This document shows positions 10,654 through 58,636 of a stretch of 64,000 bases of DNA, in pieces. The notes below the pieces were generated by a model. It ran no database searches. It saw nothing but the letters and a program-made list of their open reading frames with translations, and was not told where the DNA came from. The DNA lies in contig NW_027361696.1 in NCBI RefSeq assembly GCF_039654945.1, positions 67,828,001-67,892,000 of the forward strand. Reading direction: 5' to 3'. Numbering within the stretch: position 1 is the stretch's first letter; each line of letters starts with the position of its first letter. Source of the stretch: Dendrobates tinctorius (Eukaryota). The translations under genes were made by a program, and so were the position numbers.

Positions 10654-10746
10654 TGCGGCTTCTTGATGGTTTTAGTGGCGCAAAAAGGTTGCAAAAGTCT
10701 TCAGGTATGGAAGAGATGCGAGTTTGGAGCCGAGGACTCGGAGAGG

Positions 10747-10776
10747 GTTCCGTTCAAGCACTGTTGAAGCAAGAAC
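10747..10776 (-). promoter_or_regulatory. Iron-responsive element (IRE), canonical, 5'UTR of ferritin copy 1
   Basis: mRNA sense GUUCU-UGC-UUCAA-CAGUGC-UUGAA-C-GGAAC. Confidence 0.97.
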
Positions 10777-10825
10777 TCTGCTCAGAGTCAGGGATCATCT
10801 GATCTCCGCACCCTGGAGCTCGGGA

Positions 10826-17349: not shown

Positions 17350-17565
17350 ATGACTCAGCAGACGGAGCACAGAACGCAGCCGGGAACAGTGTGTGGTGTG
17401 CAGAGCGCTCTGCCAGCATGACTAGGCAGAACTGGAGGACATAATAAGGGATCTGACGTGAGCTGGTTGTCATGGTGACTAAGAAGAAACTGAGGCCTAG
17501 CAGCTGCTGCTCCGTGCCTGTCACAAGTTTTACCAAACGTGAATTGCAGCATTTTTCTATATATC
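17350..17565. promoter_or_regulatory. Tandem antioxidant-response-element (Nrf2/sMaf) module upstream of ferritin copy 1
   Basis: ATGACTCAGCA 17350-60 and ATGACTAGGCA 17418-28; block is homologous to 45400-45586 and 58450-58636. Confidence 0.72.
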
Positions 17566-39740: not shown

Positions 39741-40251
39741 GGCGCTCTACAATCAGCTTTATATCTATATAATCATAATTTGTTATAACTAACCGTAGTT
39801 GTTTGTGCTCAGGCAGCGCTGGGCTCCTCAGCTGGTTTTAAATAACTGATGTATAAAATTAAGCAATTGTGAGCATTTCTGGATATTTATTTTTTTTGTT
39901 TTATATACTCATGTGAACTTTGCCTTAGGGTATGTGCCAACCGTTTGCCATTGACTTTTCTGGCAGCAAAACCCCTCCCCAATCACTGATCAATTGCTTC
40001 ACCCCCTTCCCCCCCCCCAATGTGCTTAATAATCACACATTTGAAGGCTACCTCTGCATAAACTAGAGATTTGACACATGCTGAAATGCAGAAAGATTTT
40101 ATTGGAAAGCTTGCTGACAAGCACAGTCATGTCTGATCGGGGAACGAAGATCACATCAGGTTTGAGAAGCCCAGCATCTCAGGGGGCATTAGTTATTCCA
40201 GATGGACAAGGAGATGCAGACTAGACTGGTGGTATCCAGGAAGGAGACATC

Positions 40252-43281
<3,030 letters not shown>

Positions 43282-43374
43282 TGCTGCTTCTTGGTGGTTT
43301 TAGTGGCGCAAAAAGGTTGCAAAAGTCTTCAGGTATTGAAGAGCTGAGAGTCTGGAGCCGAGGACTCGGAGAGG

Positions 43375-43404
43375 GTTCCGTTCAAGCACTGTTGACGCAA
43401 GAAC
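43375..43404 (-). promoter_or_regulatory. IRE of ferritin copy 2 with a U->G change at 43396 (upper-stem mismatch)
   Basis: GUUCU-UGC-GUCAA-CAGUGC-UUGAA-C-GGAAC, versus UUCAA in copies 1 and 3. Confidence 0.92.
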
Positions 43405-43453
43405 TCTGCTCAGAGTCAGGGATCGTCTGCTCTCCGCACCCTGGAGCTCGGGA

Positions 43454-43518
43454 TTTATAGGCTGGGGAGGGGAGTGACGTCATCTGTGTGCAGCCAATCA
43501 CAGCCAGAGATCGGGCGG
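43454..43518 (-). promoter_or_regulatory. Ferritin copy 2 core promoter
   Basis: TATAAA 43454-59, TGACGTCA 43475-82, CCAAT 43494-98, GGGCGG 43513-18. Confidence 0.85.
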
Positions 43519-43582
43519 AGCGTCCTGCAGGCGGCGTGCACACTCCCTCCTCTGCCAGCTGGGGTCACACACAGGCACCTAA

Positions 43583-43936
43583 GGCTGTGTGCACACGTTG
43601 CGGATTCCGCTGCGGTTTTTTCCGCGCGGAAACGCAGGTAAAGTGACCTGCGGTTTTCCTGCGGTTTGGTCTGCGGTTTTGCCCTGCGGTTTCACACCTC
43701 TACACCTCTACTATGTTAAAGGTGTGAAACCGCTGCGGAAACTGCACAAACAATTGACATGCTGCGGTTTGAAAATCGCAGCAAAACCGCGCGGAAAAAA
43801 CCGCACCGTCAGCACAGCGTTTTTGAAACCCCATAGGGTTTCATTGTACTGTACTTGGTCAACGGAACTGCTGCGTTTCCACAGCGGCAAAAACGATGCG
43901 GAAACGCAGCAGAATCCGCAACGTGTGCACACAGCC
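43583..43936. mobile_element. TAA-target MITE ~125 bp upstream of the copy 2 TATA box (ortholog at 56465-56822)
   Basis: TAA|GGCTGTGTGCACACGTTGCGGATTC...GAATCCGCAACGTGTGCACACAGCC|TAA; empty site CTAAGGGAAC at ~10950 in copy 1. Confidence 0.88.
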
Positions 43937-45399: not shown

Positions 45400-45586
45400 A
45401 TGACTCAGCGGGGAGTGCACAGATGACAAGAGCGGCATGACTAGGCAGAAATGGAGAGCACAATAGTGGAAGTGGGGAGGGACACTGACGGTGCTGCATG
45501 TCCTAGTGATTGAGCAGGAAACTACTGATTCCCCGCAGCCGTCACGAGTTTTACCCAAACCAGAATTGTAGCATTTATCTGTATAT
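45400..45586. promoter_or_regulatory. Tandem ARE module upstream of ferritin copy 2
   Basis: ATGACTCAGCG 45400-10, ATGACTAGGCA 45437-47, GTGATTGAGCA 45506-16. Confidence 0.7.
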
Positions 45587-51090: not shown

Positions 51091-51594
51091 CGGCGCTCTA
51101 CAATCAGCTTTATATCTATATATAATCATAATTTGTTATAACTAACCGTAGTTAGTTTATGCCCACACAGCAACAGGCTCCTCAGCTAGTTTTAAATAAA
51201 TGTATAAAATTAAGCAATTGTGAGCATTTCTGGGTGTTTATTTTTTTGTTTTATATACTCATGTGAACTTTGCCTCAGGGTATGTGCCAACCGTTTGCCA
51301 TTGACTTTTCTGGCAGCAAAATACAAACCCCCCCCAATCACTGATCAATTGCTTCCCCCCCAATGTGCTTAATAATCACACATTTGAAGGCTACCTCTGC
51401 ATAAACTAGAGATTTGACACATGCTGAAATGCAGAAAGATTTTATTGGAAAGCTTGCTGACAAGCACAGTCACGTCTCATCGGGGAACAAAGATCACACC
51501 AGGTATAAGAGAAGCCCAACATCGCAGGGGGCATTACATTTCAGATGGACAAGGAGATGCAGACTAGACTGGTGGTATCCAGGAAGGAGACATC

Positions 51595-56163
<4,569 letters not shown>

Positions 56164-56256
56164 TGCGGCTTCTTGGTGGTTTTAGTGGCGCAAAAAGGTT
56201 GCAAAAGTCTTCAGGTATTGAAGAGATGCGAGTTTGGAGCCGAGGACTCGGAGAGG

Positions 56257-56286
56257 GTTCCGTTCAAGCACTGTTGAAGCAAGAAC
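56257..56286 (-). promoter_or_regulatory. IRE, canonical, 5'UTR of ferritin copy 3
   Basis: Identical to the copy 1 IRE. Confidence 0.97.
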
Positions 56287-56335
56287 TCTGCTCAGAGTCA
56301 GGGATCGTCTGATCTCCGCACCCTGGAGCTCGGGA

Positions 56336-56400
56336 TTTATAGGCTGGGGAGGGGAGTGACGTCATCTGTGTGCAGCCAATCACAGCCAGAGATCGGGCGG
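56336..56400 (-). promoter_or_regulatory. Ferritin copy 3 core promoter
   Basis: TATAAA 56336-41, TGACGTCA 56357-64, CCAAT 56376-80, GGGCGG 56395-400. Confidence 0.86.
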
Positions 56401-56464
56401 AGCGTCCTGCAGGCGGCGTGCACACTCCCTCCTCTGCCAGCTGGGGTCACACACAGGCACCTAA

Positions 56465-57420
56465 GGCTATGTGCACACGTTGCGGATTCCGCTGTGGTTT
56501 TTTCCGCGCGGAAACGCAGGTAAAACCGCAGGTAAAGTGACCTGCGGTTTTCCTGCGGTTTGGTCTGCGGTTTTGCCCTGCGGTTTTGCACCTCTACTAT
56601 GTTAAAGGTGTGAAACTGCTGCGGAATCCGCAGAAACAATTGACATGCTGCGGTTTGAAAACCACAGCAAAACCGCGCGGAAAAAACCGCACCGTCAGCA
56701 CAGCGTTTTTGAAACCCCATAGGGTTTCATTGTACTGTACTTGGTCTGCGGAACTGCTGCGTTTCCTCAGAGCCAAAACCGCTGCGGAAACGCAGCAGAA
56801 TCCGCAACGTGTGCACACAGCCTAAGGGAACATTTCTAGGGTCACATTACTGAAAGTCAAGAGTTTTTTCCAAAAGCTTTACAAAATTGCAAGAAAGTGC
56901 ATGACTAGCAATCCCCTAATCTGTAATAATAATTATTATCGTTATTGCATTCATTACTATTAGTCTTATAATATCGCTGGGAATTTCACATCAGATAACA
57001 AAAGTCTTTTCTCTTTTCTTAGTGAATTGTCTATGTGTCTGTATTCTGCTGCAGATTTGGCGAAAGAGACTGAGGCTGTGTGCACACGTTGCGGATTCTG
57101 CTGCGTTTCCGCAGCGGTTTTGGCTCTGTGGAAACGCAGCAGTTCTGCTGACCAAGTACAGTACAATGAAACCCTATGGGGTTTCAAAAACGCTGTGCTG
57201 ACGGTGTGGTTTTTTCCGCGCGGTTTTGCTGCGGTTTTCAAACCGCAGCATGTCAATTGTTTGTGCGGTTTCCGCAGCGGTTTCACACCTTTAACATAGT
57301 AGAGGTGTGAAACCGCAGGCTAATCCGCAGACCAAACCGCAGGTCACTTTACCTGCGGTTTTACCTGCGTTTCCGCGTGGAAAAAACCCGCAGCGGAATC
57401 CGCAACGTGTGCACATAGCC
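56465..57420. mobile_element. Two near-identical MITE copies in opposite orientation (56465-56822, 57074-57420)
   Basis: Internal asymmetric marker CCCCATAGGGTTTCATTGTACTGTACTTGGTC appears as its reverse complement in the second copy. Confidence 0.82.
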
Positions 57421-58449: not shown

Positions 58450-58636
58450 ATGACTCAGCGGGGAGTGCACAGATGACAAGAGCGGCATGACTAGGCAGAA
58501 ATGGAGAGCACAATAGTGGAAGTGGGGAGGGACACTGACGGCGCTGCATGTCCTAGTGATTGAGGAGGAAACTACTGATTCCCCGCAGCCGTCACGAGTT
58601 TTACCCAAACCAGAATTGTAGCATTTGTCTGTATAT
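58450..58636. promoter_or_regulatory. Tandem ARE module upstream of ferritin copy 3
   Basis: ATGACTCAGCG 58450-60, ATGACTAGGCA 58487-97. Confidence 0.7.

Follow-up and report, generated by a model that had tools for sequence, protein, structure and literature searches.

The 64-kb stretch of Dendrobates tinctorius DNA analysed here (the window) contains a small array of ferritin genes, and one base in it raises the question of whether a duplicated ferritin gene has slipped out of iron control. The original prediction, made from the letters alone, held that the second of three copies has a damaged IRE in front of an otherwise intact, stress-inducible gene. We asked whether the base is real and transcribed, what it would be expected to do to the IRE, and whether it marks a settled regulatory state or a variant still in transit.

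Three intact H-type ferritin genes

In the window lie three H-type ferritin genes, each of four exons and intact, and each on the minus strand. The coding exons of copy 1 (10653-10552, 9268-9122, 8526-8401 and 8265-8110) and copy 3 (56163-56062, 52601-52455, 52317-52192 and 51750-51595) were placed by reading ORFs and splice sites, and those of copy 2 by ORFs together with RNA joints: coding exon 1 (34 codons) at 43180..43281, bounded by the joint 41274|43180 in four runs; exon 2 at 41128..41274; exon 3 at 40854..40979; and the coding part of exon 4, stop included, at 40252..40407, after which a 3'UTR with an AATAAA signal runs to about 40100. GT..AG introns and complete 176-aa ORFs are found in all three copies, bearing out the expectation that coding sequence and splice sites are undamaged. 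The ferroxidase ligands E23, Y30, E58, H61, E103 and Q137 (frog M numbering) are likewise present in each, and by these ligands, four exons and a length of ~176 aa the genes belong with vertebrate H-type ferritins; in a search confined to the open stretch of exon 3, its homologues carry PF00210. Among the database matches listed, the closest proteins are XP_073427017-19, three consecutively numbered Dendrobates tinctorius entries named 'ferritin heavy chain B-like', each two to three residues off; the exact protein of copy 1, or of copies 2 and 3, was not found among the cluster members listed.

Between copies 2 and 3 the coding sequence differs at three synonymous sites and the protein not at all; the copy-1 protein differs from theirs at five residues. 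Copies 2 and 3 have S8, F117 and H125, as against N8, L117 and Q125 in copy 1; among related hyloid frog ferritins the majority show N8 and Q125, with L or V at 117. The three changes probably arose before or soon after the duplication that produced copies 2 and 3. The 3'UTRs are separated by several indels and by the polyadenylation signal, AGTAAA in copy 1 (8110-7950) and AATAAA in copies 2 and 3 (40251-40100 for copy 2), making them handy paralog-specific markers.

A tandem duplication holds copies 2 and 3, its two units being about 95-97% identical and diverging by 1.8-2.5% in introns 1 and 3. Intron 2 (40980-41127 in copy 2, 52318-52454 in copy 3) differs at 16.8% of aligned sites and may have a separate origin or mark a conversion tract. 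Intron 1 measures 3460 nt in copy 3 and 1905 nt in copy 2; the extra ~1.5 kb (53630-55407), which partly matches repeats elsewhere in the window, looks like an insertion.

One IRE departs from an otherwise constant sequence

A scan with the Rfam IRE_I model (RF00037, gathering score 34, exceeded by all three hits) identified exactly three IREs in the 64 kb, one before each ferritin gene and all on the minus strand: those of copy 1 (10744-10779) and copy 3 (56254-56289) are canonical, at 51.8 bits each (E 4e-9), and that of copy 2 (43372-43407) scores 45.9 bits (E 2e-7). Copies 1 and 3 match over all 36 letters, and 35 of the 36 are the same in all three copies. The one exception lies at 43396, the nucleotide just 3' of the bulged C (43397), where copies 1 and 3 have U and copy 2 has G (C on the plus strand); read directly, the minus strand of copy 2 from 43407 to 43372 includes, in order, UUGC, the variant G, UCAA, the hexaloop CAGUGC (43391-43386), UUGA, A and CGGAA. 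Direct reading and the Rfam alignment thus agree on the single-base difference from which the original prediction set out. The change turns the n9-n24 pair (U9-A24) at the base of the upper stem into a G.A mismatch, which cmscan marks as non-canonical in the first upper-stem pair, and the replacement of U at n9 accounts for the drop in score from 51.8 to 45.9 bits. In place of an upper helix with five base pairs, copy 2 therefore has four Watson-Crick pairs and a G.A; the apical CAGUGN loop, with its C14-G18 cross-loop pair and AGU triplet, is present, and the element lies where ferritin IREs lie, in the 5'UTR, ~21 nt past the inferred start at 43428.

The sequence from which copy 2 departs is an old one. 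UGC-UUCAA occurs in all three amphibian ferritin transcripts found in public assemblies; in one of them (L002, anuran) the encoded protein is more than 20 residues apart from those of the array, and its 36-nt IRE is the same as in copies 1 and 3. Since every amphibian transcript sampled keeps UGC-UUCAA, the copy-2 G is, on this sampling, a departure from a sequence constant over deep amphibian divergence. A literature search for amphibian ferritin paralogs with divergent IREs found nothing relevant. In the same collection, several amphibian-type ferritins (P0163, P0164, P0172 and P0173), together with the 870-nt contig L003 (GCA_013368415.1), are filed under Escherichia coli; the L003 contig holds a complete vertebrate ferritin IRE at 7-42, by which token it and these proteins are eukaryotic cDNA contaminants in bacterial assemblies.

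Predicted folding of the copy-2 IRE

IRP1 recognizes two fixed points, the bulged C8 and the A15-G16-U17 triloop, whose spacing and twist are set by a five-pair A-form helix (PMC8466369). RNAfold gives copy 2 an upper stem of 4 bp, against 5 bp in the canonical form, and a minimum free energy of -7.6 as against -8.6 kcal/mol, a cost of ~1 kcal/mol; together with the cmscan flag, this upholds the shortened stem that had been proposed. Pair-probability calculations point to a second effect. C8 is predicted to be unpaired with a probability of 0.68 in copy 2, compared with 0.998 in copies 1 and 3, because two other pairs are predicted to form: G9-C25 (0.41 in copy 2, 0 in copies 1 and 3) and C8-G26 (0.32 in copy 2, 0.002 in copies 1 and 3). 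This competing register would tie up the bulged C in about one-third of the ensemble.

The two positions of the affected pair are known from human disease. By alignment, n9 of copy 2 corresponds to FTL +34 and its partner n24 to FTL +49, and the FTL changes c.-166T>C ('Paris +34U>C'), +49A>G (Ghent) and +49A>C are causes of hyperferritinaemia-cataract syndrome (HHCS; PMC12652614, table 2). For +49A>G, the apparent KD for IRP1 rises from 0.50 to 2.70 nM, an affinity about five-fold weaker, direct binding by EMSA falls by 75%, and a gene-dose effect is seen in serum ferritin (PMC5740175). Copy 2 thus carries a candidate loss-of-repression allele of the HHCS type, an IRE point change at a site with a documented effect on IRP binding, and the claim that the change falls at an IRP-sensitive position holds: +34U>C hits the same nucleotide, and +49A>G and +49A>C its partner (PMC12652614; PMC5740175). 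The word 'damaged' fares less well. The upper helix does fall short of five pairs, but the element clears the IRE_I gathering score by a margin of 12 bits, and its human counterparts weaken IRP binding without doing away with it, so that, on model score and analogy, the term overstates the lesion.

Leader, promoter and AREs of copy 2

The 5'UTR of copy 2 spans 43282..43428 on the minus strand, its start being placed by the TATA box and by the end of an RNA contig (X9 record 30, at 43428). The TATAAAT box itself (43453..43459, minus strand), identified by sequence and comparison of the copies, lies within ~170 bp of proximal promoter that all three copies conserve. Upstream of each copy is a pair of AREs, TGACTCAGC and TGACTAGGC, starting at 17351 and 17419 for copy 1 (17351-17427, ~6.6 kb upstream), at 45401 and 45438 for copy 2 (45401..45446, plus strand, ~2 kb upstream) and at 58451 and 58488 for copy 3 (58451-58496, ~2 kb upstream), in every case as a motif match. 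A BLAST search of the copy-1 ARE module against the window returned, near copies 2 and 3, only a 22-nt match; the AREs are accordingly common to the copies at the level of the motif and do not belong to a long conserved block. With that qualification, TATA box and AREs are as intact as originally described.

Five substitutions are private to the copy-2 5'UTR (43396, 43352, 43347, 43344 and 43285), and one more falls at the inferred start site. Taking copy 1 as the reference, we count five private substitutions in the 147-nt 5'UTR of copy 2 and none in that of copy 3, and in the coding sequence one in copy 2 and two in copy 3, all synonymous. The 5:0 contrast in the leader is weak (binomial p about 0.06); it is suggestive, weakly, of relaxed constraint on the copy-2 leader, and can equally stem from conversion between copies 1 and 3.

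The G form is transcribed, as a minority

To follow the variant in RNA, we used Logan contigs from four public runs (X5, X6, X9 and X12) that carry the same species label and come from three studies, over the region 40100-43600. The runs behave as RNA, as judged by the excess of exon over intron depth (in X5, 1e5-1e6 in exons and 10-60 in introns) and by joints at the exon borders, which fall exactly at 40407|40854, 40979|41128 and 41274|43180 in all four. Only explicit rows of the variant tables were used, an absent row being taken as no information.

At 43396, X5 gives the canonical A a depth of 532,508 out of 616,264, leaving a C remainder of about 13.6% (~84,000); in X6 the figures are 57,204 out of 57,559, a remainder of 0.6% that is at error level; in X9 all 136 units of depth are A and none C; and X12 has no coverage there. 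These C shares are total depth minus the listed A and not values listed by the tool, and are rough, Logan contig depth being a crude measure. X5 belongs to a different study and sample record from the main DNA runs and could be the assembled animal or a relative. The G is therefore a real, transcribed allele: its presence in the RNA of X5, under another study and sample record, makes an assembly slip very unlikely, and tells strongly against the two outcomes, an assembly error and a silent copy 2, on which the original prediction could have foundered. Of the three runs with coverage, the base recurs in X5 and does not recur in X6 (error level) or X9 (none).

Other copy-2 markers behave differently. 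The copy-2-private synonymous A at 40303 accounts for 47% of depth in X5, 31% in X6 and 0% in both X9 and X12, and copy-2-like states at 43344-43352 are far commoner in the RNA than the G at 43396. The shares are biased by a 95% likeness filter, which drops short contigs with the three clustered differences at 43344-43352. Both X5 and X12 contain contigs that match the copy-2 introns exactly; copy 3 departs from these at 6 sites. In one sample or more, the G thus parts company with other copy-2 markers; it accounts for the smaller share of depth and may be polymorphic.

Many intron contigs of these runs are mosaics of copy-2 and copy-3 states (40100-43600 in the one, 51440-56480 in the other), a pattern suggestive of gene conversion, of unequal exchange, or of additional alleles or paralogs in the array. 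One contig of otherwise copy-2 type has the copy-3 states at 41554, 41556 and 41723; another combines a 3-nt deletion at 40743-40745 with the copy-2 base at 40689. Two leader variants in the RNA match none of the three copies of the window: A>G at 43302 makes up 16-47% of depth, and an A inserted after 43309 about 10% of X5 depth, indicating that the expressed alleles or paralogs outnumber those of the window. The minor share of the G, taken with the mosaic contigs, fits a young or segregating allele in a gene-converting array, or the state of a weakly expressed copy.

Discussion

We think it probable, if well short of certain, that the G is a young variant causing partial loss of repression in a functional, transcribed copy 2, one that is probably not fixed and whose leak is modest. 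A recent U-to-G change at n9 would remove the U9-A24 pair that closes the five-base-pair upper helix; the new G would, on the predicted fold, compete for C25, leaving C8 to pair with G26; and both effects would loosen the set distance, read by IRP1 and IRP2, from C8 to the AGU triloop. IRP binding would be expected to drop several-fold without being lost, and mRNAs from the G allele to be less tightly repressed in low iron, with transcription of copy 2 through its promoter and AREs presumably unchanged. The G would then either segregate in the species as an allele of copy 2 or represent a copy that is weakly expressed. By analogy with the human mutations, which hit the same pair, the likeliest effect on function is that IRP repression weakens and transcription stays as it is, and for a variant that is young and probably not fixed this should amount to a modest leak in total ferritin and not to a new regulatory regime. 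Two considerations pull the other way: a single G.A beside a bulge can fit A-form helices, and a change at the partner position is, by a secondhand account, neutral for IRP1 in FTH1, so that context matters.

An alternative is that the variant is functionally neutral, the G.A being tolerated and IRP control of copy 2 essentially normal. We regard this as unlikely, yet deserving of real weight. The element scores 45.9 bits against a gathering score of 34; SIREs permits one upper-stem mismatch, n09-n24 included (PMC2896125); the ferritin IRE-IRP1 interaction is very tight, with a Kd of about 30 pM (PMC8466369), such that a few-fold loss may leave the IRE saturated; and the FTH1 A-to-G change at the partner site left IRP1 binding in EMSA undiminished, as the work of Sanchez et al. 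is summarized in PMC5740175. Two human studies tell against it, describing mutations that impair binding only mildly and still raise ferritin (PMC3585816; PMC5740175). Moreover, this nucleotide is one at which FTL is mutated in disease, no variation is seen there among the amphibian ferritin IREs sampled, and the alternative register is predicted to sequester C8.

A stronger claim would be that copy 2 has escaped for good, having lost tight IRP repression after the duplication and been kept as an iron-insensitive, ARE-inducible gene. The copy is intact and transcribed, and its five private leader substitutions, set against none in copy 3 and beside a single private synonymous coding change, would fit a relaxation of constraint limited to the leader. 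Yet the G is near or at zero in two of the three runs that cover 43396, even though the copy-2 A at 40303 reaches 31% in X6; copy-2-like states at 43344-43352 are far more plentiful than the G; the 5:0 contrast is weak, and copies 1 and 3 could have produced it by gene conversion with each other; and the proteins of copies 2 and 3 are the same, with no coding specialization to go with the change. Fixed escape is in our estimation distinctly improbable, and the idea of escape from iron control as a settled state, with which this analysis began, is not supported by the available RNA, in which the G is a minority form that stands at 0.6% in X6, is absent from X9 and sits in an array of mosaic contigs. 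In a related and similarly doubtful scenario, fixation of the G in copy 2 of this species, or its presence in sister dendrobatids as well, would signal regulatory subfunctionalization of a young duplicate: one copy under tight IRP control beside a constitutively translated, ARE-driven H ferritin, a natural and selectively retained counterpart of the human HHCS mutations. Finally, an assembly or sequencing error, with T as the true copy-2 base, could draw on the 95-97% identity of copies 2 and 3, which can confuse polishing, and on the canonical base in most of the RNA depth, but is highly implausible given that the reference C makes up ~84,000 of 616,000 depth units at 43396 in X5, far above error level.

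On the favoured reading, of a young and leaky allele, the locus offers an internally controlled test: a wild frog allele at an HHCS nucleotide, with a canonical twin that encodes the same protein. Such a test could measure what one closing pair of the upper helix adds to IRP repression in vivo, and reveal whether an IRE comes under looser constraint once its gene is duplicated. If the G is only a rare allele, it would be a small population-genetic curiosity.

Comparison with known IREs

The bullfrog ferritin IRE is the classic IRE model, and the ferritin IRE is among the most conserved of vertebrate regulatory RNAs; to our knowledge, natural departures within its core are on record almost only as human disease alleles. 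The copy-2 IRE adds a natural case to a kind of IRE lesion already known, one of modest interest unless population and cross-species data show the change to be fixed. Compared with the vertebrate ferritin IRE (RF00037), it retains the CAGUGC hexaloop, a C in the bulge position five nucleotides 5' of the loop, the UGC/C internal-loop-bulge, the lower stem and the cap-proximal place; it differs in having G at n9, hence G.A as the fifth upper-stem pair, and in a predicted rival register that pairs the bulged C.

With human HHCS alleles of FTL it shares the mutated nucleotide, Paris +34, and a pairing partner at the +49 site. The substitutions themselves differ, human U>C producing a C.A mismatch and A>G a U.G wobble, whereas the frog change is U>G; the setting differs as well, in that the L-chain IRE of human FTL already has two wobble pairs and the frog gene is of H-type and one of three copies.

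Other IREs also depart once from the 5-bp helix, among them Hao1 (an A:A mismatch) and SLC11A2 and EPAS1 (a 3' bulge; PMC2896125). In those genes the irregular site is found in mid-helix or on the 3' strand and is the conserved state; the copy-2 mismatch, by contrast, abuts C8 and departs from a conserved ferritin sequence. Escape from IRP control is itself familiar among ferritins: the intron-less mitochondrial ferritin has no IRE, and insect ferritin transcripts splice the IRE out. In these systems, as would by analogy be so for copy 2, a product is made outside IRP repression alongside regulated ones; but mitochondrial and insect ferritins lose the whole element, whereas in copy 2 a single base is predicted to weaken an IRE that is still there.
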